Positions 1,832 through 57,828 of a stretch of DNA of 64,000 nt are shown here, piece by piece (the stretch's first letter is position 1; every line of letters begins with the position of its first letter). The notes beneath the pieces are model-generated. The model was not told where the DNA came from. It did no database searches and saw nothing but the letters and a program-made list of their open reading frames with translations. The stretch is from Dimorphilus gyrociliatus (Eukaryota; Animalia; Annelida): NCBI GenBank assembly GCA_904063045.1, contig CAJFCJ010000012.1, positions 496,001-560,000 on the forward strand, given 5' to 3'. A program made the position numbers and the translations under genes.

Positions 1832-4800
1832 GAGAAGCTTTTTCTGCTGAAGTGAATCAGAGAGTAGCTACACTTGCACTGAGTGAAAATTTGTATTTGA
1901 ACAACAAAGTATGTTTGTACTTAATGTCTTATAAAATAATAATGCGAAAGCAACCTTACTGTTTCCATGACGCACCTATTCATTATTAAAATGTTTCCAA
2001 GTTCCACTTTTTTATATTAATTAATAAGCATAGTATATTTTTAAAATAGTCAAATGATCAATATGATTGGTTTTGGGCTGATGGCTCTAAACTTGGGTCC
2101 AGAAGTTATTGGAAAGATAAAGCACCAACGTTAAAACCGTTTGTATTTTTTGCAAAATTGTTTAAATGATTCACTAATCAATTAATTGTGGTAAATTAGT
2201 AATGAGAGAAACTCTACTTGTGTAGTTGTTGCTAGAGACGGACAAAGTAAAAAAAATTGGATGCATAAATCGTGTGATGAATCGTTTGGTAGTCTTTGTA
2301 TGCATAAATCCGGTAAATTTAGAATATTAATTGAGTTTTTAAATAATAAAACAATAAAATTTGTATTAAAGGAACCTGCGCAGCTAATTGGGATATTCAT
2401 CATAACTATTGTTATAGATTTTTCACTACAGAAAATATGAGAACTTCGTTCAACAATGCAAATAAGTATTGCACTGATAGAAAGAGTACAATGTTACATA
2501 TAAAGACGTAAATTTTCAATAAGAGAAATATCTAGTTTATAGTTTAATAAATGTATATGAAATTTTAGGGAAAACGATCAGAATTTTGTTAATAGACGTC
2601 TTGCTGGATATTTTAGTTCTGGGGCAAGATATTTATGGTTAGGAATTAATGATGCAGGTTCAAATGATCGAGATCGATGCAAATTTAAATGGACTGATGG
2701 AACTTCTATTACAAGCACTTATAAAGTAAATTTTATTTTATAGCTTGAAATAACATAAAAGTGTTCATTTTATATTTATTTTGCAGAATTGGCTGTCAGA
2801 TACCCCTCTCTGCTTTCCCAATACGAAAATTATCTCTTATGGATATATTTTCACGGGTAATACGCATTTACAAAACTGATGGATTTTAAAAAACAAAACA
2901 ATTGTCTTAAACTTTATCCTTCTATTTTAATAGGTGATCGAGCTGGTAGATGGAGAACGAGTGAAAATCCGGCTCAATTGAACGCATTTGGTTGTAAGAT
3001 TAGAGTAGGTCAAGAACCTACTGAACCAACTCAACCTCCCGGTAACTATTTATTTATCAATTGAAAAGCATGACTTAATCATAAAAAATTGTGTTTCCAA
3101 TAGTTCAATATTCTTGCCCAAGTGGATGGAAGTTGAATGATAAAAAGTGCTATGCATTCTTCGATTTAAAAATGAATTTCTTAGAAGCCCGTGATCAATG
3201 TTTAAAAAATGATTCACAATTAGTACAAGTGTATTCTCCTGATGAAAACGCCTTTGTCACTGGTCTTAGTAACAACGTTATCTATATGGGGTTGGCCAGT
3301 CTTACTCCAAAAGGCAATTACACCTGGATAGGTGTGCCAAGTGGAATAGTACATATTTAGCCTACATATATATAAGCCGTTAGATTTTGATTATTATTTT
3401 TTTTATCAAATTCTAGCCTAGTTATACGAATTGGGCTCCAGGAGAACCTAGTCATACACATGGTAATATAGAAGAAGATTGTGGAACAATGAAATTTTCA
3501 CCTGAGACTGATAAAGGAAAATGGAATGATGTACCTTGTGATTATAAGTATAGTTTCGTTTGTGAAAAGCCTGCGAGTAAGTTGTTTCTTGTTTAAATCT
3601 TCCTTAGGTAGCAAAATATATTGTTTACGTTAACCAGGTGTGGTTGGTAATCCTACTACTCCTCCAGTGACAGTTCCAACTCGTAAGCTGTTTCAATTTA
3701 TATTCATTTTATAGCTTTAAAAACTTATTCTTTTTCACAAAGCGAGCTGGACAAATAAATGTGGTATCAATTGGTCTGATCGCCTTAGATCTCCCTATTG
3801 TTATATGGTTATATCCACAACTATTTCGTGGCTTTTCGCGAAAAGAACTTGTAATCACTATGGTGGGGAGTTAGCTTCCATACACGATGCTGCAGAAGAA
3901 GCGTACATAAGAGAACTTGCTGTTCAAGGTTCACAGTCAGCTTATTGGATAGGGATGAATGACAGATCTCAGAAAAAGTTTTGGAAATGGTCAGATGCTA
4001 GTCCCGTGAATTTTATAAACTGGGGCCCGTCTTTCCCTAATCCTTCTGCAGGTAAACGAGATTGCGGTGTGTATGTGCCAGACAAAAGAGAATGGCAAAC
4101 TCGCGACTGCCGAGGAGGAAGAAACGGTATTGTCTGTAAAAAGAGAGGAAAACTACCTGATGGTCCTGCGACATCTCCAGCAACTCCCCCTGTAACAAAA
4201 CCGGGTATGAAATATGGATGTCTAGCTGGATGGAAGGAATGGTCTCAAGGAAAACACTGTTACAAATTTATTAACGAAACAAAGACTTTTGACGAAGCCC
4301 GTAGAGGATGTCAAGATTCCGCGATAGGTGCCGATTTAGTATCAATTCAATCAACGGAAGAAAATGACTATATCTTTGGAAATTTAAATCAAAGTAAGAA
4401 ATATTTTAAGCCAACTCTAATTTATATAAGAAAATTGAATATCTGATTAGTCGGAAGTTCTAACGGCGTTCCAAGAGCATGGATAGGAATGAGAAACATT
4501 TTTGGCTATGGTCATTTTGCCTGGTTAGATTTAAGTGAATTTAGCTTTTCAAACTGGGGTGATAGTCAACCGGAAAGCTCTAATACAATTGGTTCGAAAT
4601 GTACTAGTATGAATCTACAAGTAAGAAAGTTATAAAATATTTGTTTTCCAAATATGTAATTGACCTATGACTTTACTGTTAGAATAATCGTTGGAGAACA
4701 AACGATTGTACAAACAATTTACAAGGTTTTGTTTGCAAAACGAAAAAAATTTTGGTTCCTGCAGTTACGCCAACGATAGCTAATTGTCCAATGGTCAGAG

Positions 4801-10041: not shown

Positions 10042-12050
10042 TTATGTCTTATTATAAAACGTCCAGTAAACAATATTAAATAATGCAAACAATGCTGGAA
10101 AAAAAGCTCTGCAAAATATGTCAATAATTTTTGCTGTACTCTTCTTGTCTTTATTATTTTTCGATGGAGCTAGATGTCTACTTCTTTGGTGATCATCATC
10201 ATTTGGTATGACTCTTACTATTCTCTTCCTAATTCTTTTGTCTTTTGATGGTAGCAGTTGACTAACCTTCAAATTAATATATGAAGCAAGTTAATAGCTG
10301 CTAATAAGGCTACTTGATAAGATAATACGCACTTTTGCATTAGAAAACATTTCCTTCAAGAACTGGTTAGAGTTTCTTTGACGTCTATCTAAAAGATTTA
10401 CTAGGGGATATTCAAGAAATGCTCCAACAACCATTAAGAGACAAACCGCCATCCATATGTCAATAGCTTTGACATAAGATAATTTAGGCATTTGGGCAGC
10501 AAAATTGGAATTTTGGGTACTAACAGTTAACACTGTTAATAAGCCTAACGATATTCTAGGCGCTACAGCTTCAATTTCTATCCAAAATGTTAGCCAAGAA
10601 AGTATTACTATTAACAATGAAGGCACATAAACATTAATTAAGTAATATTCAAAATGTCTCTGGAAAAACAGGTCTGCTTTTAAGCATGAAAAATTCCCTG
10701 TCATTGTTTTGGAGTAACAGTAGGAATTTAAAATATCCACTAATTGAAATTCTGGCACTTTAAGATTTCTTGCAACCGTTGTTGGCCACTTGCTATAATC
10801 CCAAATTAACAAAAGGTCACTTGCCGTATAGCCATCTGTTTAAAGTAATCAACAAATTACTTTTATACAAGAGAAAACAACAAAAGACATTCTTATGGTG
10901 ATGAAAAACTAGAGATATTTAGATAGTTTTAAGGTAGATATCTAGCACATAAAATTTCCATATAGCTTAAATTAGTAAAACTTTTAAATAGGCTTAAATT
11001 TATGTTGTTTTTAGTTTGAGTATATAGTTTCACTATCATCCTACTTTAAGACCAATCGTTTATAAATACATCCTCTTATATAGGAAGCTGAGATCTGACT
11101 TTCTCTTGTAAGTTAAGTGCTTGGGTAGGTAAAAGGTTCTGAATTGATGATTTGACTTGGTAAATGATAACTGGGATAATTAATCCTTTAAATTTTTTTT
11201 AAACTATCGCGAAATCAAGTTACTTTAGACGAAAATAGTATGGTAATATTATACTTAAATGCTTGCAAGTCATCGTCTCAACGTTCGTGACATCTGTACT
11301 AAATAGGCTGAAATTCTTTCCTCACTTTCTTAATATATGGTACTAGTTGAATTTTTTTCTCTTTCCTTTACTAAACAACAAACATTTACATGTAATGCAT
11401 ATAATCTACTTTAAAACATATATAACATTTTGTTGCTTGCTTTGTTTAAACATTCAATTAAAATAAAATAAATTAGCAAAAGAGAAGCATTAAAAAGAGA
11501 AATTCTTACAGCTCCCAATTACTACTCGGCAGGTTTGATTGTCCAGGGGAAATTTCTTTAGTTGTAATTCACAATGTAAAGTTAAACTTAATCTTTGACT
11601 GTAAGTGATATTTCCATTTGGATACAAATGTAAAAGTCGATTAGGAACAACGATATCGTGGGTTCTTCCTGTTTTCTCATTCTTTATGAATACATCAGGG
11701 ATCCATACTTTTTCGATCTGTTTATGTGAAAGAGTATACTTCCGTGTCTTATTTAAGTGAGAAAATCTTAATCTTGGATCATTCCATTTGAGTCTTAAAT
11801 AAATATTCATATCGTACTCCTGTTGGTTATTTACAAATACATATTATTATTAAGAATGTGCTTGGTTTGTATAAACACAAACCATTCCAGCCTCTCTTAA
11901 TGCTGACAAGGAATTGATGCGAAAGTTTATTGAACAGACAACAGGTTCGTTAATGCCAATGTTAGGAGGAACTTCTCCATCGTACTGGGATGGAGATAAT
12001 AATCCACTAACTATTTGATGCATTTCTGTTCGCTGATTGGGAGAAGAATT
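10042..12050 (-). CDS. Cys-loop ligand-gated chloride channel subunit, GlyR/GluCl-like; signal-peptide exon(s) upstream of 12050 not resolved
   Basis: NIYLRLKWNDPRL, loop A WIPDVFIKNEK, Cys loop CELQLKKFPLDNQTC, SY|GY junction, loop C YCYSKTMTGNFSC (second disulfide typical of GlyR/GluCl), M1 YVPSLLIVILSWLTFWI, M2 APRISLGLLTVLT, SYVKAIDIWM, M4 IDIFCRAFFPALFALFNIVYW. Confidence 0.92.
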
Positions 12051-13748: not shown

Positions 13749-15118
13749 ATGTTTAACAATATCTCTCGTTTGTTAAACGAAAGTAATACAAATATAATGG
13801 AAATTTGTAAGAATTGTAAGTACAATGAACTCATTTTTCTATAAGTCTATTTTCAAGCGAATCTATTTAAAATTTAATTATTCTGTTTTTTATACTGGCT
13901 TATCTTTCATTTTTCTAGAAGTTGAACATTCTATATATTTTATATTCTCATTTAAACAAAACTATAGTTACTTTAAATATATTTTATATAAAACTATATT
14001 TCTTGCATCTTCAATAATACAAACTTTATGTTTCAATTTCATTTCATTCCTTAATTTTAGATGTACGGATTTCCGGAAGCAGAGGAGTAAACAATGCACA
14101 AACTATTATTCAGAATATTTTAATACCACTCTTTGCAACTTTTGCTCTTATTGGAAATTTAATAAACGCCTCCAAGTTTTTAAAACGATTTATGGTCATA
14201 AGAAAATGTTCAAAAAATTTGAAAACGTCTTATTCTTTGTTAAAATTTCGTTATGTTATTGAAAAAGCAACTTTATTTGAATTGAGTGCCTGGTCTATAA
14301 GTAATTGTTTATCATGTTTAGTAATTTTACCTCGATTCCTTGTTCCCAAACGACAAGGTATATTTTGTACCAAATCCTTCGGCTTGTATTTTGAGTTGTA
14401 TGAACCTGCAGTTAAGCAAATATTTAGATGTGAGGGGACTTGGTTAGCTGTTTTAGCAGTATGTACAAATTTTTTATGCATTAAAAAAATTCACGAAGCA
14501 CACTTATACGTATCTCTCAAAAACTTGACAACTATGATACTCTTGAGCGTCGGTCTCATCGCAGTGGGTCACATTCCCATGTTGTTCAAGTATCAGTTAG
14601 ACGCCATAGAAAACGACAAAATTACTTTTTACACCATTATTCCAGGTTGGTTAAGCGGTAAGCAGGAGCACTTTTTTTCTTGCCTATGGTTAATTATAGG
14701 ATATCTAATGCCACTTTTGCTATCAAGTTTTTGCATGGCCAAGATAATACGGACGCTTCTTACTTATCAAATAAGAAGTACACAAACGAAGAAGGCTATT
14801 AAAAAAGCAGCTGTATTAGTTTCTGTAAATGTTATATTTTTATTGCTATTTCAAACACCGTATCAAATTTTTACTTTTTTTTTATTGTTAAAAACCATGA
14901 AAAGCGTCTCTACAAATATTGTAGTATTCAGTAATATTGTAGAACTGTTAAACGTTTTGCATTACAGTTTAAACTGTTTTGTTTGTTGTTTTTTAGAAAC
15001 TTCTCCAAAAAAATGTCTTTGTATTTTAATATATAAATTTGGTCACAAAAGTGATATAAATAAATCAGTTAAATGGTCAAGAGACAGTGCAAATTTAGAA
15101 ATAGATGACCACGAATAA
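13749..15118 (+). CDS. Divergent class A (rhodopsin-like) GPCR, two exons (approx 13749-13815 and 14060-15118), FMRFamide-receptor-like/chemoreceptor-type
   Basis: Exon 1 MFNNISRLLNESNT has N-glycosylation sequons and a phase-1 GTAAGT donor. TM1 QNILIPLFATFALIGNLIN lies upstream of the called ORF in the same frame. TM5 WLIIGYLMP, TM6 FQTPYQI, TM7 LHYSLNCFVCC; seven hydrophobic segments. Confidence 0.8.
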
Positions 15119-26775: not shown

Positions 26776-27644
26776 TTCATTCTACAGAATGAAAAATGCG
26801 CTTCAGGCATTAATAGTTGGTAATTTTTTCTAAGGGTTAAGAGCGATGTCTCTCTTTTTGAATTGTATAAACAGTTTGATAGAAAAATTAATGGATTACT
26901 ATTTTAGTGTAAAAAAAAGAAAACGAGTTTTTTTCGTAGTTGGAATCAAAAGCGTAACGAAAAGATCAACGAAAACAATCATTGACAAACTTATAGCGTT
27001 TGTAGATCATACAAAATGGAAAAGGGGAAGAATTAATTATACTCTTGAGATAATACATTTATTAATTATATTTTCTAAGGAATTTACAATTCCCTCTCAT
27101 TATTATTGATAAATTATTTTATCAAGTAATGGATAGGGAATATGTATAATATTAGTCTAATTTTCTTGGAATAAGCAAAAAGATAAGTGATTTTATAAGG
27201 AAAAATAGAAGAAATGATAAAAGAGCTTCTAATTTAGATATTTTTATTAAATACATTACTAAAATATGTAAAAATTGTAGAATTTATGATGGAGAATTAC
27301 TATAGAAAATTTAATATTATTTAAACAAGATTTAATTAAGTAATGTTGGTTGATAAAGATTTTTTTTTTGATAGAAAGAAGAACGTTTTTAATACTATTC
27401 TTTAACAAGTCTACTTTATGATTTAATCTAATAGAGAAAAAAAAGGAAATCTCTCTCTATTTATTAACTTTATCTTATGAATGAAACTTATTCAGGTTTT
27501 TTATTCTATTCTTAGCAAAATTAACTTTTATTAAATCACAATCAGCACATCAGCACCTTAAGTCAATCACTGCACTAAATATTTACTCAAGATAAGATAA
27601 TTAATAAAGATTGCCTTGACGTCAAATGTGTTGATCATGTAGAA

Positions 27645-30600
27645 ATGATTGTGGTGTCTGTACTGTTATTTCTATTCCTAATAAATACATCCTTTCCTCA
27701 GAATATAAAATTGCACGGATGTGGAGCATCTTTACCGGCAGAAGTTTATGAAGCTTGGGTACCAGCGTTTGAAAGTTATCGCCGTGAATTTGTGAATATT
27801 GACTTTGAATATTACGCGACAGGAAGTGGAGAAGCTATTCAGGCCATACATGGGGGAAACGAATCAAGTTTAAATGTGTGTCTACTTAATGATCTAGGAT
27901 TTTTCGGCTCGGATATTCCATTGTCACCAAGCGATTATGATAAAAATCCCAATTTACAAATGCTCCCTATTCTAGGAGGGTTAGTTTTATTACTATCTGT
28001 CAATGTTTAAATTAATTCTTATATTATATAAATACTTAATTAATCGAATAATCCTATGCGAGTGTATGTTTAAATTCATTAGGAGTGTTGCCCTGGCCTA
28101 TAATTTAAAAGGGATAAAAAACTTGGTTCTTGAAAAAGATCATGTTGTAAAAATATATGATGGAACTTTTAAATGGTGGAATGAAACCGAATTACAAAGC
28201 GCTAATCCAGATATTAAACTACCTGAAGAAAGAATATCAGTTGTAGCAAGGTCTGACAACTCTGGAACGACGCAAATATTTACGGAAACATTAAGTGCAA
28301 TATCAAAAGAATGGAAAGAAAAATATGGTGTTTTTTCAGAAGGTTTTAATGAAGCTAATGGTTCCTCAAAATGGCCAGACGGAGTTATTTCATTTCGCCT
28401 TAAAAGAAATCGAGGTGTCTCGGGAATACTGTTGTCTTACCAAAATTCAATCGGTTACATTTCAACAGCTGATGCAAACACAGCGCTGCTAACTTATGCT
28501 CGAATCAAAGAGGGTAACAAAATAGTCGACATAGAACCGGATAGAATGCAGGAAACCATGCAGAGAGCTATGAGGCACTTTACAAATAGAATGACTGTTA
28601 CTTTAGCAGAGCATACATATGCCGACGAATACCCATTCATAGGATATACGTATATGGTATTTAATAAAACCTCAGAAAGCAACTGTAAAAGGATGAGAGA
28701 GTTAGTCCGATATTTTTATTGGATTACAAAAGAACCATTTCCACAAAATGATGCCAAAGATTTTAAAATGGCTGGTGTCCCAAAGAAAGTATCAGATTAC
28801 CTTTTTTCGGAAGTTATAGATAAAATACGATGTGGTGGGGATAATATGCTAAAAGTTGCTAGGGATCAAATGGATGCTGAAGAGCTATCAAAGCAAAAGT
28901 GGCGAATTCCTGTAATAATTGCCATTCCAATTATAAGTCTGCTAATTTTATCGTTGATATCCTACTTGATAGTTCAACAGGTTAAATTTATAAAATTCTT
29001 ATTAATATTTAAGCTTTTACTCATTTCATAAGGCTTTTATATTCATTTCTTATTCAACAGATTCGACTAAGAAGATCCCTCTTAACGGATGATTGGAAAA
29101 TACCGATAGAAGAAATTATTCTCAGATGGTCCAGAAAAGATGGATTATTAAGGCCCGACGGCTCAAAATACCAAAATTCTATGCAAAGTGTTGCTTCATT
29201 AACAGTTTCTGCTATAACTAACTTTTCGTATACAACAACAACTGGAGGGACAGGTATAGGAAAAAGTGTTGAGGCGATTGGATTGTGGAAAGAAAAGGCC
29301 GTTGTTTTAAGGTCTTTTCCCAATGCTTTGAGCTTGGAGAAGATAACATGCAAGAAATGTCTCATCTTTCTAAGGGATAAAATTAACCACTTTAATGTTG
29401 TCTCTTTTCTTGGTGTAACAATACTGGATGACGCAGCTTACTTAGTAAGCGATCATTCGCCCAAGGGAACTTTACGAGACGTTGTTCAAGATGATCGATA
29501 TAATTTGGACGAGAACATTAAATTTTCATTGGCATTAGATGTCGCTGGAGGTTTGAAATATTTACATTCACAAAATCTAAGTCACGGCAATTTGACAAGT
29601 GATTCATGCGTTGTCGATCAACGCTGGAACGTTAGAATCGCCGATTGGGAATACTCCAAATTATCCGAGTTCTCAATCGGTTTAAGTAATGCTACCTTAA
29701 ATTCAAATTTCCATGATTCTGAAAAAGATTATGATGTGGAAGCTAGGAATTCTATGTGGCATGCACCGGAGGTTCTAAAGGTAATATATACTTTGTTTTA
29801 ATTTTTCTCAAAATCTATCACTTGCTTAGCGAAGAAGTTAACAGACTTTCTTCATTTCGACATCCTGCTACCTTATACTATCCAATTTAGAACTAATTAC
29901 ATGCGTTTATACTAAATATAGCACATATAGATTTATTAAGATACTATATGTACTAAACGTATGTAAAACTATATATTTATTTATTTATTTATAGAATACA
30001 AAAAGATTATTTCATGTTTTATATTCTATTTAAATTCTATCAAAAAGAAGCGTCTCTTTAGTCGTTTTCCTATGATTTTAGGGAGAATGTACGACGAAAG
30101 CCTCAGATGTCTATAGTTTTTCTATTATTCTGGTTGAAATATTTACGAAGGAAGATCCATATTATGACTTAGCGGAAAGTTTAAGTCCTGTAAAGATAAT
30201 TGAAGAAATAAAAACTAAAGACATACGACCAAACTTAGACGATCCAAACTTAACCTCAATAAAGAACACTTTAGAAAAATGTTGGTCAATAACACCGAGC
30301 AAAAGACTATCGTCATCAGCAGTTTGTAAAGAATTGAAATCTCAGAGGCCCAGTAAAAAGAGTGTCGTAGATTGTATGATGGAAGCTGTTGAAGGGTATG
30401 TAACCAAACTAGAAGAAAAGGTTAAGGATAGAACGAGGGAGTTGGAAATGGCGAATTTAGCAACAGAAGCTTTGCTTCATCAGATTTTGCCGCCATCCGT
30501 AGCTAAAAAGCTGTCTTCAGGCGAGATTGTTGATCCAGAAAAATTTGATGGCGTAACAATTTTCTTTTCGGATATTGTTGGATTTACATCTTTATCTGCA

Positions 30601-31232
30601 GAAAGCTCACCTTGGGAGATTGTGCAACTGCTGAATGAATTATATTCAGTTTTTGATACCATTATTGATAAAAAAGATGTTTATAAAGTTGAAACTATTG
30701 GTGATGCTTATATGGTAGTATCTGGATTGCCGTCTCGAAATGGAGATAAGCATGCCGACTGCATAACCGAAATGGCTATAGATTTCTTAGCAAGTGTCAA
30801 AATATTCAAGATAAGACACAAGCCCGATAAGAAGCTATTGTTAAGAGCTGGTGTACATTCCGGTCCAGTTGTTGCAGGAGTTGTTGGACAGAAAATGCCA
30901 AGGTAAAAAAAAATACAATAATAAGATTGTTATAAATAATGGATGAATTCTTGTAATTGATCGTGTTTTTTTCCTTGTTTTAATCCATTAGATATTGCCT
31001 ATTTGGAGATACAGTTAATACAGCAAGTAGAATGGAATCCACTTCAGAACCTTTAAAGATTCAGATATCACCGGAAACATTTCAGCTTTTAAATAAAAAG
31101 AGGGAATATTTGTTTAAAGAGAGAGAAAATGTTGAAGTTAAAGGAAAAGGGAAGATGACAACATATTTCGTAGAGAGCAAAATAAATTATCAACCATACA
31201 TTCCTCCAAATCTTTTTGATAGTAACTATTAA
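27645..31232 (+). CDS. Receptor (transmembrane) guanylyl cyclase with an extracellular PstS-type phosphate-binding domain; exons 27645-27979, 28083-28980, 29061-29780, 30082-30902, 30992-31232
   Basis: Signal peptide MIVVSVLLFLFLINTSFP. PstS-like [66 protein letters not shown]. Kinase-homology domain (HGNL, DVYSFSIILVEI), coiled-coil hinge LEEKVKDRTREL, cyclase FSDIVGFT...KVETIGDAYMVVSG...RYCLFGDTVNTASRMES. All introns are GT-AG and frame-consistent. Confidence 0.95.
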
Positions 31233-33576
31233 AAGACATTTGTCTAAAACATATTTATAGTAAAAACTTATCAAAATGTGCAATATATCTCAATTTTTTG
31301 GTTTGTGAAACGACCTAATATAATGAAATATGTGATTTCCTGCAGTTTTCTGTTTTTTACAAAAAAGGTACCATAATAATTTTTGTGGTTTGCAGAATTT
31401 AAATAAAATATTTTATAACTTTCTATATTTTTTTACTATAACAATGAGTTAATCATTAAGTTAATTTGCGCATAACAAATCATATTTCTGATAATACCAT
31501 GAATAATAAATAAATATTGCTCATGCGATTAATCAACTAATTGAATTATTTACTTCTGTGAAAATAAAAATATTCTATAATTGTTTTCTTAAATATTATA
31601 TAGTAATTGATTACTATTTCCACTACACGAGTTACCCTCTTTCTCTCTCTTACTCTTTCTATGTAGAATATATATCTCTATCTCTCTTTATAATGCCTTC
31701 TTTTAGTCTACTTTCTGCCTAGTTTTTTGTTAACTTATACCAAAGGGGGATAGTTTTCTAAGAGTTGCAATCCCTTAAGAGTAACTTATTTCTTTTTTTT
31801 AAATCTTGAAAAAAGAACTGCTACACAGTCAGCAATGTAATTCTTTCATGAATGCTAATAGCAAAACTATCGATTTTTTGAAGACGAAAGAAAAACATAG
31901 AGGATGCTTATTTATATTCCCTAGTGTTCATTCTTTTGCATGCATCTAACATACTTTTATCATTCATTCTATCTAATCAATTTTACAAGCATTTTTTTAT
32001 GAAATATAAAAGGTGAGTAAAACGTATAAACCCGATATACTATTTAATGTTATACTAATAAACAAAGTTTCTGCAGTTTCCAATTTACCTTACAGTCTAT
32101 TTATAACGATCACACTTTATATCTTACTACAAAAGAATAGTACTAATGCACTATTTTTTTTTATCTCTCGGAAAGTATTCTAGACAGTTGTACTTGATTA
32201 TATTAAATAAGAAGGATCTTTTATGTCTTTTAGATGGAATATTTTAAAGGAAGTCAAAGAATTTAAACTAATAAACATAGAAACAAGATTATTTAATAAT
32301 TTCAAACGATATACTTTTTGCATATAAAAATTTTCAATTCATCTTTGACGATCAACAAATGAAACTTAATATAACATTCTTTACTAATATTCTTAAGTAA
32401 TTATATTAATATTTATATATTCATATATAATTATGCAATTTTCCTGATAATGTTTACCAATTATTCGTAAAGAGTATTCATAATTGATTAAATGAGTTTG
32501 TAATATAATTAAACTATAAGTTGTAAACGGCGAATAACCTTTAACAAGATTTTTTTCTTTGAATTTGTATCATCTAGTATATTGAGACAGGTCCATGTAG
32601 TATATGCTTCTTTCTCTTATTATTAAATATACACTTAATAACTTCTTAATTATTTTTTTGTGGCCGTAGAGTAATGTAATTTACCTCTTTAATATCTACA
32701 ACAAAAGTATTATTTTTCCCGTCTGTAATTGATTTTAATAAAGAAAAATTGCCAACTTAAACATAATGAGAGTACGATGGAAATCGTCTAAATTGTCATT
32801 AGGCTCTTGATAAATAGCATTGATTAATGACTGAAATATCTATTAGGTCTAATCAAAGAGCTTCAGTCAGTTTCATCTTTAAATATCTCACAGATTCTTA
32901 AGTATTAGCTCTTTGAATGTCGTTGATGCTAAATAATAAGTAATTACATGTATATTTCCACTAAAAATCATTACAAACGCTAAAGCAAAAACAAAAGACT
33001 ATTCAGAGGGAATAATTGATCATATTGGAAGGCAAAAGTTGGAAGATTACATTTGACTAATTCGATAAAATAGAAACGAATTAAGCAAAATCCCCTAGTT
33101 TAGATGAAGGAAAGGGTATCAAAATATTTTAGACTCTTGATTATTATACCATAAAAATGCAATTTATCTTTATAAGAAAAGGTCTAGGACATAAAGCTCG
33201 TAATCTAATAAAAATTAGAAATAAAATGAATCCAACTTTGCAACGTTAGCGATATATAGTTCTCTTATTTTTCATCCTTAAAAAATAGCTTACCTTTTTA
33301 ACTCAATGTCACGATATCAAATTCCCCACTTCTTAACGTTTTAATAGAGATCATGGTAAAAGTCGAATAAATTCACCTGTCACCAACAAACTGTTAACGA
33401 TAGACAACAGAGAATCATGTTTATTTTACAATGTTTTATTCAAGTAAGAAAAAACTTTAAGAAAATTATGTTTTTTTTTCTTATAAGAATAAAGTTGAAC
33501 AGAAAAATTATTAATTTGTTTTCAATTTTTCATATCATTTTTCTAATTGGAAGAAAGCAGTAAAACCAAAATTCTA

Positions 33577-34626
33577 TCATTTAAGAAAATTACAACTGCA
33601 ATATAAAAACAAATCTTTTAGCGATTTTCTAAACGATTTAGATGAAAAACTATACAAGAAAAAATTAACAGAAAAGTTTACATAGTAAAACATTTGAAAA
33701 ACATCTTGCACTTGCTTTAATTCTAGCGTCACATAATTATTGCCACGCTTTACTATAAAAAATAGCTTTATACAGTATGATGGTGCACTAAGCAGAACGA
33801 AACATGCGGCTATAATAATCAGAAGTTTAGCTGATCTTCTTTGTCGCGCTCTGGAATTTTCAGGACAATTATTTTGAATTTCACTATTTATTTGCAAAGG
33901 TTGATTGCATTCGGTCGCTTGATCGGACGATACTCTTCCGTTTTTTGAAATAGATGTACTTGATCTATTTCTAGGAGGAGTATATTTTAATAATCTTGCA
34001 GCTAATAAGACATTTAAAGGTACAATTACCAGAAATGGAAGAAAAAGATTAACAAAAGCATCAAACGCGTTCATAATTTCTATAAGTTTATAGAGCGAAA
34101 GTCTTGGAGAGCAATACCCTCCCTCATTTACATAGTAAGACCATAAAACGAAGGAATATAATATAGCAGCAAAAACAACAAGACAACTGCATATTTTAAC
34201 AGTACTTTCCCTCATTACCCATCTTTTAAATTTTAAAGGAAAGAATACAGCAAAAAACCTTTCTAAAGTGAACAAGCACATAACCCATGTACTCAAAAAA
34301 CTGCACACAAATGTTACATACGGTATTAACTGACATAAAACCGGAAGATGGTAGATATTTATTTCAAACATTCCAAGCCATGTTAATAGAAGGGCTATAA
34401 GAAAGAGGTTGTCAGAAACAGCAAGGATTGAAAGGTAGATTCCGCAATTCTGATGTTGTAGTTGCTTGAAGCGTTTCATGGCAAAAACAAATATTGATAG
34501 TGAGTTTCCCATAAGACCAATAGCAATAATTGCTGGTAGACAATATAAATTCAAGTAATGCGTAAATAATCCAAGAGCCGTTTCCCTTAAATTCGACGTT
34601 GTTAGGTTCTTAGTAGAATTATCCAT
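33577..34626 (-). CDS. Single-exon class A peptide-receptor-like GPCR (TRH/FMRFamide-receptor-like orphan)
   Basis: TM1 GLMGN, TM2 LAVSD, TM3 TLERFFAV, TM6 FVLLSAPSY, TM7 NFSVNFFLY; N-terminal sequons. Confidence 0.9.
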   Translation of the reverse strand: MDNSTKNLTTSNLRETALGLFTHYLNLYCLPAIIAIGLMGNSLSIFVFAMKRFKQLQHQNCGIYLSILAVSDNLFLIALLLTWLGMFEINIYHLPVLCQLIPYVTFVCSFLSTWVMCLFTLERFFAVFFPLKFKRWVMRESTVKICSCLVVFAAILYSFVLWSYYVNEGGYCSPRLSLYKLIEIMNAFDAFVNLFLPFLVIVPLNVLLAARLLKYTPPRNRSSTSISKNGRVSSDQATECNQPLQINSEIQNNCPENSRARQRRSAKLLIIIAACFVLLSAPSYCIKLFFIVKRGNNYVTLELKQVQDVFQMFYYVNFSVNFFLYSFSSKSFRKSLKDLFLYCSCNFLK

Positions 34627-37450: not shown

Positions 37451-38509
37451 TTAACAGTATCCTATTTTCAACAAGTGTCGTAGAGCTTTTCTAAATACTT
37501 TAGAAGATAAATTGTATAGAAAAAAATTAATGGAAAAATTTACATAATAAAGAATCTGAAATAATTCTTGTAATTGTTTCAAAGTATTTGGCAATAATGA
37601 TTTATTTGGAATTAGTATAAAATACAGCCTTATGGCATAAGATGGCGTACTTAGTAGCGTAAAAAAGAAAGCAATAGTAAGTAACAGTTTCGCCGATCTT
37701 CTTTGCAATGCTCTGTAATTCTCTTCCATTATTATCTGGAAACCAGTTTCGTTTTGCAGTTGTAGAGCTTCGTCTATCGTTATATTCTCACCCGGTAATG
37801 TTTGCAAGCGAGTATTAATTTCAAATATTTCTGTTGATCTTCTTTCTCTTTTAGCATATTGTAGTAATTTTATGGCTAACAATACATTTAAAGGAACAAT
37901 AATTAGTAAAGGCAAAAATAGTGTAATAAATATATCCATTCCATTCATAATATCGATCAGTTGGTTAAAATTAGGTCTCTGAACGCAACCTAAATTTTCG
38001 TCTACCCTGTAACACCATAGAGGAAAGGAGAAAAATATTCCTCCGAAAAATGTTAGAAATAACGACATATGTATTGCGCTCTTCCTCACACTCCATCTCT
38101 TCAGTTTTAAGGGGAAAAATACAGCAAAAAACCTTTCTAGAGTGAACAAGCACATTACCCATGTACTCAAAAAACTACATACGAATGTTACATACGGTAT
38201 TAACTGACAAAAAACCGGAAGATGGTAGATATTTATTTCAAAAATTCCAAGCCAAGTCAGCAGAAGAGCTATTAGAAAGAGGTTGTCAGAAACAGCAAGG
38301 ATTGAAAGGTAGATTCCGCAATTCTGATGTTGTAGTTGCTTGAAGCGTTTCATGGCAAATACAAATATTGATAGTGAGTTCCCAATTAAACCAATGAAGA
38401 TTATTGCTGGTAGACAGTATAAATTCAAGATATTTGCAAATAATCCCAGAGTAGACCTATCTCCCGTCTTGAAGAACTGACGAGTAACATTTTCTGTATA
38501 ATTGTCCAT
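37451..38509 (-). CDS. Single-exon class A GPCR, tandem paralog of 33577-34626
   Basis: Same motifs (GLIGN, LAVSD, LERF, LSTPSY, NFSINFFLY). TM1-TM3 is nearly identical to the neighbour. Confidence 0.9.
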   Translation of the reverse strand: MDNYTENVTRQFFKTGDRSTLGLFANILNLYCLPAIIFIGLIGNSLSIFVFAMKRFKQLQHQNCGIYLSILAVSDNLFLIALLLTWLGIFEINIYHLPVFCQLIPYVTFVCSFLSTWVMCLFTLERFFAVFFPLKLKRWSVRKSAIHMSLFLTFFGGIFFSFPLWCYRVDENLGCVQRPNFNQLIDIMNGMDIFITLFLPLLIIVPLNVLLAIKLLQYAKRERRSTEIFEINTRLQTLPGENITIDEALQLQNETGFQIIMEENYRALQRRSAKLLLTIAFFFTLLSTPSYAIRLYFILIPNKSLLPNTLKQLQELFQILYYVNFSINFFLYNLSSKVFRKALRHLLKIGYC

Positions 38510-55334: not shown

Positions 55335-57828
55335 ATGCTACGATTCTTTCAAGTTCTAACATATAGTTGCTGTATTTTACTATCCTATAGTAAATTAACA
55401 GAAGAAATTGAATCAGCTAAAGATTTTTTAGAGTCTTACAATAGAGAAGCTGAAATCGAAAATACTCTTTTATATAATGCAATATGGAATTGTTACACAA
55501 ATATTACCGATTATAATCAGAATTTGATGGTGAGAAATTTATTAAAACAACTAAATTAACGTAATTTTTTGTATTTATTAAACGCTTGAATATACATACT
55601 TATTACTTTAAAAAAGACAAAAGCCCAACAAAGGTTTGCCCGTTTTGGAAAAGATAAATGGGAAAAATTAAAAAAATGGAATTGGAGAAATTTCACGGAT
55701 GAATATATAAGAAGACAATTTCAAAAGATTTCCGATGTAGGCGAATCCGTTCTATCTAACGAAAAATATCAAAGATACTCAGAAATAAAATCGGACTTGG
55801 AAAAATTATATTCAACGGCAAAAGTTTGTAAAAAACCTGGAGATTTAAATCCAGAGAAATGTTATAGCTTAGAACCAGATTTAAATCAATTAATGGCTAA
55901 TTCGACTAATTGGGATGAATTATTGTGGGCATGGAAAGGTTGGAGAGACGAAACTGGTCAAAAAATGTATAAAATGTTTGACGAATATGCTGAATTATTT
56001 AGAGAAGCTGCTCGAATTAATGGATTTGAAAAGGCAGATGAATATTGGAAAAGTTGGTATGAAATGGATAATTTTGATTCCGAAGTTGATCGTTTATACG
56101 AGCAAATAAAACCGTTTTATCAACATCTACATGCGTACGTAAAAAGAAAATTAAAGAAAACGTTTAAAGATAGAAAATTTCCGGATAGTGACCACATACC
56201 AGCTCATTTATTAGGAAGTATGTGGTCAAATAGTTGGGTAAACATTTTCTCTCAAGTTGCCCCTTTTCCAAATAAAACTAACATCGAAGTTACGAAAGAG
56301 ATGTCAAATCAGGTTTAATTTTAAGTTAAACATATTAGCATAAACAAAATAACAAATAGTTATCAAATTTCTTTTATTTATTTTAATACTCTTTAGAAAT
56401 ATACAGTGAAAAAGTTGTTTAACATATCGGAAGAGTTTTTCCTATCATTAAATTTAAAAGCAATGCCTAAAAGTTTTTGGAAAGACTCTATGCTTACTAA
56501 ACCACAGGATAATAGAACTGTTTTTTGTTTTCCCTCGTCGTGGGACTTTTACAATCAAAAAGATTTTAGGTAAATTATAACCATTAACCGTAATGGACAT
56601 GGTAGTATTCTTTCCTAATAATCTTCTCCTATATTTAGGATACTGCAATGTACGGAGATAAATATGGAATGGTTAGTTATAACTCATCACGAAATGGGTC
56701 ATATTCAATATTTTCTTCAGTATAAACACTTACCAGTTGTCTTTAGGGACAGTGCTAATCCAGGTAATGAATATGAATTATTTAAAATCTATACATTATA
56801 ACCTTTTTTATGCTAAATCAAGCATTTCACGAAGCTATCGGAGAGCTATTAGCTTTGTCTGTTGTTACACCAGAATACCTACAAAAGATTGATCTATTAC
56901 CAAAAATAAACAATGATTTAGGTAATAACATAATAATAGAACTATTAAATCGTTTTGCATAAATATCTTTATTTTGATACCTAGATATGGATATTAATTT
57001 TTTAATGAATCAAGCCTTAAGTAAATTGACATTAATACCATTTGCCTATTCATTGGAAAAATGGAGATGGGGAGTTTTTAATAATAATATAAAAAAGGAA
57101 GAATATAATAAGGCATTCTGGAAATTAAAGTAATTATAGCATTATTGTATAATAATAATTAATATAGTATTTTTTTTTCCTTAAAGATGTAAATATCAAG
57201 GATTATCACCTCCTATAAAAAGACATGACCATGATTTAGATCCAGGTTCCATCGTTCATGTACCGTATGGCGTACCATATATTAGGTAAATAATGACAGA
57301 ACCTTGTAGAGTTCTCTTTAGTTTCTAGTTCTATTCACTTTTTATTACTACCATTACAGATATTTCATTAGCCATATTGTTCAATTTCAATTCCACGAAG
57401 GTCTATGTAAAGCTTTAAAGCATAAAGGACAACTACATCGCTGCAATATATTCAAGTCTAAAGAAGCTGGTAGTCTATTGAGGTTTGTTTTATTAATCTT
57501 TTAAAAGCAGATACTTGTTTGCCTTTATAATTGTTTCTAATTTTTATCCTTTCCAAAGTAAAATGATGAAGCTAGGCTCATCTAAGAAATGGAGCGTAGC
57601 CATGGAAATTATTACGGGTTCGTAATACAAAAGAAACTATAAGAGGAATAATTCTATTTATTGATATGTTTTTGTCTTTCAATGCGTAAAAAAGGTCAAT
57701 CAAAGATGGACGGAAGTTCTTTACTAAAATATTTTGAACCACTGATAAAATATCTCGAAGAAGAGAACAAAGGTCATAAGATAGACTGGAACGAAGAGTG
57801 TTCAGACAGCTATGTAATCGAGCTTTAA
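55335..57828 (+). CDS. Single-domain angiotensin-converting-enzyme family peptidase (M2)
   Basis: Signal peptide; [20 protein letters not shown], zinc motif [32 protein letters not shown]|YF...[17 protein letters not shown]. About 9 small introns. The C-terminus may splice further at 57814. Confidence 0.94.

Follow-up and report, generated by a model that had tools for sequence, protein, structure and literature searches.

Can an animal receptor guanylyl cyclase carry a phosphate-binding protein as its ectodomain, and if it does, what would such a receptor detect and where would its ectodomain have come from? The question is raised by a gene of the annelid Dimorphilus gyrociliatus, located on the forward strand of contig CAJFCJ010000012.1 (assembly GCA_904063045.1). 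The stretch analysed, which we refer to as the window, comprises the 64,000 nucleotides from position 496,001 to 560,000 of that contig, and all coordinates given here are counted from its first letter. The product of the gene is a type I membrane receptor guanylyl cyclase in which a PstS-type ectodomain, belonging to the class II periplasmic-binding proteins (PBP), stands in place of the class I ANF-receptor domain.

From the N-terminus to the C-terminus, the protein consists of a signal peptide, the PstS-type domain, one transmembrane (TM) helix, a kinase-homology domain (KHD) of the pseudokinase kind, a coiled-coil helix and a class III cyclase. This architecture had been proposed in the initial annotation of the locus, and it is confirmed by Pfam, by NCBIfam (PstS profile TIGR00975), by hydropathy and by the spliced coding sequence (CDS); all the motifs quoted in that annotation are found in the spliced protein. 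Among the Pfam profiles, PBP_like_2 matches exon 1 weakly and exon 2 with an E-value of 4.5e-14, PK_Tyr_Ser-Thr matches exons 3 and 4, Guanylate_cyc matches exon 4 (7.6e-41) and exon 5 (6e-21), and the C-terminal end of HNOBA, which corresponds to the coiled-coil linker, matches residues 758-795 in exon 4. ANF_receptor (PF01094) gave no match on exons 1 and 2. Hydropathy peaks solely at residues 1-19, which are signal-like, and at residues 384-414, which correspond to the TM helix, and the ectodomain bears four N-glycosylation sequons. The KHD has HGN where active kinases have HRD and DWE where they have DFG, replacements that indicate a pseudokinase, as in other receptor cyclases. This segment aligns to the KHD of the atrial natriuretic peptide (ANP) receptor 1, NPR1, which is the best solved relative of the C-terminal half of the protein (E 4.6e-70, 239.6 bits).

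The spliced pieces of open reading frame (ORF) give a CDS of 3015 nt on the + strand, uninterrupted over 1004 codons and followed by a stop codon. The limits originally assigned to the gene, 27645-31232, coincide exactly with its start and stop codons. The four introns measure 103, 80, 301 and 89 nt, and all of them are of the GT..AG type. The features are listed below with the evidence for each one; the exon joints are those of transcript contigs from two RNA runs, X1 and X7, the second of which comes from another, related species.

27645..27979, + strand: exon 1, with the start codon, a signal peptide at about residues 1-19 and the beginning of the PstS domain (ORF, splice donor, PBP_like_2, TIGR00975 positions 1-48, transcript contig from 27698).
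27729-27734, 27825-27827 and 27912-27914, + strand: ligand codons of exon 1, for S29/L30, S61 and D90, respectively (alignment to E. coli PstS).
27980..28082, + strand: intron 1, 103 nt, GT..AG, phase 2 (joint 27978>28082 in the X1 and X7 contigs).
28083..28980, + strand: exon 2, with the remainder of the PstS domain and the TM helix (PBP_like_2, TIGR00975, matches to PDB sequences).
28249-28269, + strand: phosphate loop R168-x-D170-x-S172-G173-T174 in exon 2 (ligand alignment).
28684-28686 and 28831-28833, + strand: eukaryote-specific Cys pair in exon 2, C313 and C362, respectively (alignment).
28906-28974, + strand: TM helix I387-V409 in exon 2 (hydropathy).
28981..29060, + strand: intron 2, 80 nt, GT..AG, phase 0 (joint in X1 and X7).
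29061..29780, + strand: exon 3, with the juxtamembrane segment, a Ser/Thr-rich stretch, the Gly-rich loop and the N-terminal two thirds of the KHD (PK_Tyr_Ser-Thr 1.6e-16; alignment to kinase and NPR1).
29781..30081, + strand: intron 3, 301 nt, GT..AG, phase 0 (joint 29778>30080 in X1).
30082..30902, + strand: exon 4, in which the C-terminal part of the KHD extends to about 30348 and is followed by the dimerisation/signalling helix at about 30400-30513 and, at 30532-30902, by the N-terminal two thirds of the cyclase (residues D815, E855, D859 and R906; PK profile, HNOBA end, Guanylate_cyc 7.6e-41; NPR1 239.6 bits).
30903..30991, + strand: intron 4, 89 nt, GT..AG, phase 2 (joint in X1 and X7).
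30992..31232, + strand: exon 5, with the end of the cyclase (C927, N934, R938), a short tail and the stop codon (Guanylate_cyc 6e-21; transcript).

Beyond the stop codon, the 3' untranslated region reaches at least 31397 in the X1 transcript contig. Intron 3 carries a short AT-rich simple repeat at 29964-30000, made of tatt/tttat units.

The possibility that the PstS and cyclase exons belong to separate transcripts, which the initial annotation had singled out as contrary to its reading, was checked in RNA data, and a single mRNA was found. The X1 run, which contains 77% of the words sampled from the stretch, yielded one contig of 3127 nt that, compared with 27500-31400, aligns with 0 mismatches and with all four introns removed, in the blocks 27698-27978, 28082-28972, 29053-29778, 30080-30900 and 30990-31397. 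The X7 run yielded a spliced orthologue of 3322 nt with the same junctions, whose identity is approximately 88% as roughly estimated from mismatch counts; the 15 letters that remain unaligned at the intron 3 junction are diverged exon sequence. Since one mismatch-free contig joins all the exons, the PstS and cyclase halves are parts of one mRNA, and this holds in two species.

The same transcripts bear on whether the gene could be an artefact, that is, a chimeric gene model, a bacterial contamination or a pseudogene. No evidence in favor of an artefact was found; none of the protein matches in the collections searched is of 100%, so the genome's own protein is not visibly recorded there. Contamination and a chimeric model were rejected on the grounds of the introns, the neighbours and the single spliced contig: the gene has four spliceosomal introns, one of them inside the PstS domain, and an intact ORF, the mismatch-free contig covers all of its exons, it is flanked by animal genes, its exon structure is shared by a related species, and the low GC content is like that of the rest of the window. 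We therefore regard an artefactual origin as very improbable.

A further relative was found in the coral metatranscriptome runs X2 and X3, as an unspliced contig of 4763 nt (L001) in which the PBP, kinase and cyclase ORFs follow one another as they do in the window. This orthologue, with about 75-90% protein identity and its introns retained, occurs in coral-associated metatranscriptomes; therefore, a close relative of the source organism lives with corals or is fed to them.

The identity of the ectodomain was established by profile, by sequence and by fold. With the exons scored separately, TIGR00975 gives 141.7 bits on exon 2 (E 2.7e-41) and 20.1 bits on exon 1, values that do not reach the equivalog cut-off of 205 bits even when they are summed; on these scores, the ectodomain is to be classed as a divergent PstS homologue and not as an equivalog. 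When exon 2 was compared with PDB sequences using phmmer, the matches were the PstS proteins of Yersinia and E. coli, with E-values from 2e-21 to 5e-20; the alignment of exon 1 to the N-terminal part of PstS is weak. The fold was modelled with AlphaFold2 on the ectodomain (P0006:1-440) of an orthologue from Owenia fusiformis that is 40% identical, using an alignment of 48 rows, and the model has a mean predicted local distance difference test (pLDDT) value of 93.2 and a predicted template modelling (pTM) score of 0.86. In a Foldseek search of the PDB with this model, the top 49 matches are all phosphate-binding proteins, the first one being E. coli PstS, with a template modelling score of 0.87 by target and a root-mean-square deviation of 2.9 A over 348 columns. 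After the PstS fold, the model has a short helix followed by the TM helix. Foldseek searches of the AFDB clusters and the Atlas confirmed the fold and added no further taxa. The expectation that the ectodomain would score as PstS is thus borne out by the profile, by comparison with the sequences of solved structures and by the fold, the latter as modelled for the orthologue.

To map the phosphate ligands, an alignment was made of the spliced ectodomain, 25 relatives and the PstS sequence encoded by pstS of E. coli MG1655. The crystallographic ligands of phosphate in E. coli PstS, which we take to be T10, F11 (through its backbone NH), S38, D56, R135, S139, G140 and T141, with D137 as the partner of R135, have a numbering that agrees with the alignment to the PDB sequence of PstS. 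In the order T10, F11, S38, D56, R135, D137, S139, G140 and T141, they correspond to S29, L30, S61, D90, R168, D170, S172, G173 and T174 of the window's protein, and all nine predicted phosphate-site positions are retained. The set is also kept in almost all of the 16 animal relatives checked, and the nine residues are identical in L001.

These substitutions are relevant to a different ligand being the one reported. The ectodomain could bind another tetrahedral oxyanion or a phosphorylated ligand, such as arsenate, phosphite, pyrophosphate or the end of a polyphosphate, a phosphoester or a phosphorylated peptide; that molecule, and not free orthophosphate, would then be what the receptor reports. 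The identity to E. coli PstS is 27.5%, T10 is replaced by Ser and F11 by Leu, the S61 and D90 regions are separated by an insertion, and the summed TIGR00975 score lies under its cut-off, all of which would suit a changed specificity. However, residue 11 of PstS contributes its backbone NH only, and all the side-chain ligands are retained across the animal relatives checked, including the R168-D170 pair and D90, the counterpart of the E. coli D56 that selects protonated phosphate over sulfate. We consider it improbable that the ligand is one of these other molecules, and orthophosphate is the ligand assumed in what follows.

At the other end of the protein, the seven residues of the cyclase site are canonical: the metal-binding D815 and D859, the guanine-specifying E855 and C927, R906, and the transition-state residues N934 and R938. 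These are all the residues that a homodimeric, GTP-specific cyclase should have. Compared with the L001 orthologue, the ectodomain is 74-77% identical at the protein level, the KHD 91% and the cyclase 86%, and the dN/dS ratios calculated according to Nei-Gojobori, which are rough because dS is near saturation, are 0.11, 0.03 and 0.02, respectively. These ratios indicate that every domain, the ectodomain included, is under purifying selection.

Since the phosphate-ligand and catalytic sets are both intact, the description of the protein in the initial annotation as a candidate receptor that converts inorganic phosphate (Pi) into a cyclic GMP (cGMP) signal is a fair reading. Pi-regulated cGMP signalling by the PstS-ectodomain cyclase is the best-supported mechanism, and we infer it with moderate confidence. 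Orthophosphate (HPO4 2-/H2PO4-) would bind between the two lobes of the PstS domain and close them; the closure would travel along the membrane-proximal helix and the one TM helix, reach the pseudokinase and the coiled-coil, and in this way alter the synthesis of cGMP by the dimeric cyclase. By analogy with other ligand-gated receptor cyclases, we lean slightly toward activation rather than inhibition. The most likely role would be the chemosensory or homeostatic detection of extracellular or environmental phosphate, with cGMP effectors as the read-out.

Some considerations weigh against this mechanism. E. coli PstS binds Pi with a Kd of about micromolar, and a site of that affinity would be fully occupied at the Pi levels of body fluids and would carry no information, except if the domain faces dilute water or has had its affinity retuned. 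PstS is monomeric and the characterised receptor cyclases signal through ectodomain dimers, for which reason the coupling to the cyclase is a conjecture. The structure was predicted for an orthologue that is 40% identical rather than for the window's protein. In addition, many members of the family have degenerate cyclase sites, so the cGMP output is not universal among them.

The saturation of a micromolar site by body-fluid Pi also favors a purely structural role of the PstS domain, in which it would be permanently loaded with phosphate or free of ligand, and the cyclase would be controlled elsewhere, by intracellular Ca2+-sensor proteins, by phosphorylation of the KHD, by temperature or by a protein ligand docking on the PstS surface. 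Retinal cyclases and some nematode GCYs are regulated without a ligand of the ectodomain, and the Ser/Thr-rich stretch located ahead of the KHD is placed as are the phosphorylation sites of NPR-A. Nevertheless, a purely structural module would have no need to keep each of the phosphate ligands, and these are conserved from priapulid to mollusc; the ectodomain dN/dS of 0.11 and the identity of the nine ligand residues in L001 point in the same direction. A structural ectodomain is in our view unlikely, and a phosphate-regulated cyclase is the reading that we retain.

The architecture is not restricted to the window. The initial annotation had anticipated that similar automatic annotations might exist in other invertebrates, and we found a protostome-wide family under misleading automatic names. 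An exhaustive HMMER search with exon 2 recovered 76 clusters at 50% identity with E<1e-30, many of them with members of 850-1150 aa, and PBP_like_2, kinase and Guanylate_cyc domains occur together in 9 out of 10 long matches scanned. Among the 175 relatives fetched after blastp, PstS, KHD and cyclase are combined in 49, and PstS and KHD in a further 34, many of which are partial gene calls. The family includes molluscs (Haliotis, Gigantopelta, Patella, Liolophura, Solemya, Argopecten and Bulinus), annelids (Owenia, Paralvinella and Helobdella), the nemertean Tubulanus, the priapulid Priapulus and the tardigrade Paramacrobiotus. The names that these proteins have received automatically, such as "atrial natriuretic peptide receptor-like", "speract receptor", "retinal guanylyl cyclase 2-like" and "gcy-x-like", mirror the intracellular half only and are misleading as to the ligand. 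Given that members occur in both spiralian and ecdysozoan groups, the distribution of these sequences places the fusion before the split between Spiralia and Ecdysozoa.

Not all members of the family conserve the catalytic site. All seven catalytic residues are present in 12 of the 41 alignable cyclases (40 relatives and the window's protein), and the window's protein is one of these 12. Most mollusc paralogues are degenerate in the cyclase site, with several or all of the seven residues gone (e.g. P0004, P0011, P0025 and P0151-P0158), yet they have the phosphate ligands; they may be pseudo-cyclases or obligate partners in heterodimers.

Full-text searches, limited to one literature library and therefore unable to prove absence, found no description of a receptor cyclase with a PstS ectodomain. 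Public databases already contain the proteins and their Pfam domains, so that the architecture can be retrieved and has apparently gone unremarked. Receptor cyclases and PstS are each textbook subjects; what is new is that they are combined, with the two sites intact and maintained in several animal phyla.

Concerning the origin of the ectodomain, the next-best matches beyond the animal family in the HMMER search with exon 2 are proteins of protists and not bacterial PstS. Chromosphaera perkinsii has four tandem PstS domains, and Entosiphon has tandem PstS repeats, with four matched stretches per protein. In other protists the domain is joined to different modules: to an Ephrin_rec_like domain in Palpitomonas, to ANF_receptor in Rigifila (P0101), to the seven-TM region of class C G protein-coupled receptors (GPCRs; 7tm_3) in Plasmodiophora brassicae (P0130) and in another eukaryote (P0093), and to a cyclase, without a KHD, in Andalucia godoyi (P0125). 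These protist fusions could be phosphate receptors with other outputs. PARP is also found among the protist fusion partners of the PstS-type domain (P0166 is listed among such proteins).

The animal and protist domains share a Cys pair, C313 and C362 in the window's protein, which is invariant in 24 of 24 animal rows of the alignment. In the protist rows, the first Cys is present in 5 of 5 and the second in 4 of 5, with a gap in the remaining one, and the pair is absent in 17 of 18 bacterial-type rows. Two trees were built, both of them unrooted, with bacteria sampled from the best-scoring matches and with the taxonomy missing for many rows. In a quick tree of 163 rows, the cyclase-linked ectodomains form one clade, with a support of 99 in the SH-like approximate likelihood ratio test (SH-aLRT), apart from a bacterial clade (98). 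In a more careful tree of 46 rows, the 19 bacterial-type PstS are split from all the eukaryotic domains by a branch with support 99/96. The row of the window's protein groups with Entosiphon in the careful tree (84/77), which is probably due to long-branch attraction.

The separation of bacterial and eukaryotic PstS in both trees argues against a recent capture of a bacterial gene by animals, and a recent transfer of this kind is not supported. The sequences favor instead an old eukaryotic lineage of PstS-type receptor domains that would have been joined once to a KHD-cyclase cassette. The term "bacterial-type", which the initial annotation applied to the ectodomain, is appropriate for its fold and its binding site; it does not apply to its lineage, since the domain is eukaryotic, has the Cys pair and is set apart from the sampled bacterial PstS. 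It is possible, although we would stop short of calling it probable, that PstS-ectodomain receptors constitute an ancient class of eukaryotic receptors, so far overlooked and dedicated to extracellular phosphate, acting through cGMP by means of the KHD-cyclase in protostomes and through class C GPCR, cyclase or other outputs in protists. The gene in the window would then be a catalytically competent member of this class and the first animal receptor identified that is ligand-gated and dedicated to phosphate.

Regarding its genomic setting, the window is AT-rich, with a GC content of 0.24-0.36, and that of the gene (0.27-0.34) is in line with the rest. A tblastn search with the product found no second copy, tandem paralogue or alternative ligand exon in the 64-kb window. 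The neighbouring genes are animal and comprise rhodopsin-type GPCRs, a C-type lectin, a fragment of a Cys-loop channel and an angiotensin-converting enzyme. Three single-ORF genes of the rhodopsin family of GPCRs lie near the cyclase gene, at 33577-34626 (- strand), 37451-38509 (- strand) and 14192-15118 (+ strand), and two of the three also match the nematode chemoreceptor profiles Srx/Srw/Srsx. The gene at 37451-38509 is intronless, and its only named relatives are proteins of the bdelloid rotifer Adineta steineri, with 25% identity. A C-type lectin exon at 3805-4446 (+ strand), the TM region of a Cys-loop receptor at 10291-10812 (- strand) and an angiotensin-converting-enzyme-like peptidase at 55797-56318 (+ strand) are apparently ordinary animal genes.

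The sensing of extracellular inorganic phosphate in animals is unsettled, and the sensors that have been proposed, namely the transporters PiT1/PiT2, the calcium-sensing receptor and FGFR1, all have other primary jobs. The protein described here joins the phosphate-recognition module that is understood best to a second-messenger enzyme that is itself well understood, which makes the hypothesis direct and cheaply testable. Because the animal family is wide and has counterparts in protists, its study could reveal a general eukaryotic route of phosphate sensing, could explain phosphate chemotaxis or homeostasis in aquatic invertebrates, and could supply a natural scaffold for phosphate biosensors.

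Among known systems, the closest in overall organization are the cyclases of the natriuretic-peptide-receptor type (NPR-A/GC-A, GC-C, the retinal GCs and the sea-urchin speract receptor), which share with the window's protein a single TM helix, a KHD pseudokinase, a coiled-coil and a class III cyclase of the homodimer type that carries the guanine-specifying Glu and Cys. They differ in the ectodomain, which is ANF_receptor, a class I PBP, in them and, to our knowledge, in all characterised receptor guanylyl cyclases; with the class II, PstS-type ectodomain of the window's protein, an inorganic anion, and not a peptide, is the predicted ligand. E. coli PstS, the periplasmic subunit of the PstSCAB ABC importer, resembles the ectodomain in its fold (according to the orthologue model), in the nine positions of the phosphate site and in its sequence, with an E-value of about 5e-20. 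Unlike it, the domain in the window comes from a spliced animal gene, is tethered to a TM helix and a signalling enzyme without PstCAB partners, and has the extra conserved Cys pair and the N-glycosylation sequons.

Nematode GCYs, such as the salt-sensing gcy genes of the C. elegans ASE neurons, GCY-14 and GCY-9, sense ions, pH or CO2, and form expanded families of paralogues, some of them with degenerate catalytic sites. They are comparable to the proposed receptor as receptor guanylyl cyclases that are direct sensors of small inorganic solutes, and differ from it in their ANF-receptor-like ectodomains; we know of no nematode GCY with a PstS domain and of none that senses phosphate. The Venus kinase receptors of invertebrates (PMC2680970, PMC4026697) are another case of single-pass animal receptors with a Venus-flytrap ectodomain that is similar to bacterial PBPs and binds a small molecule; in contrast to the window's protein, the flytrap is of class I, the output is a tyrosine kinase and the ligands are amino acids. 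Finally, the PstS-domain receptors of protists have the same eukaryotic PstS-type domain with the Cys pair, joined likewise to signalling modules, but their output modules are others and none of them has the animal cassette of KHD plus cyclase.

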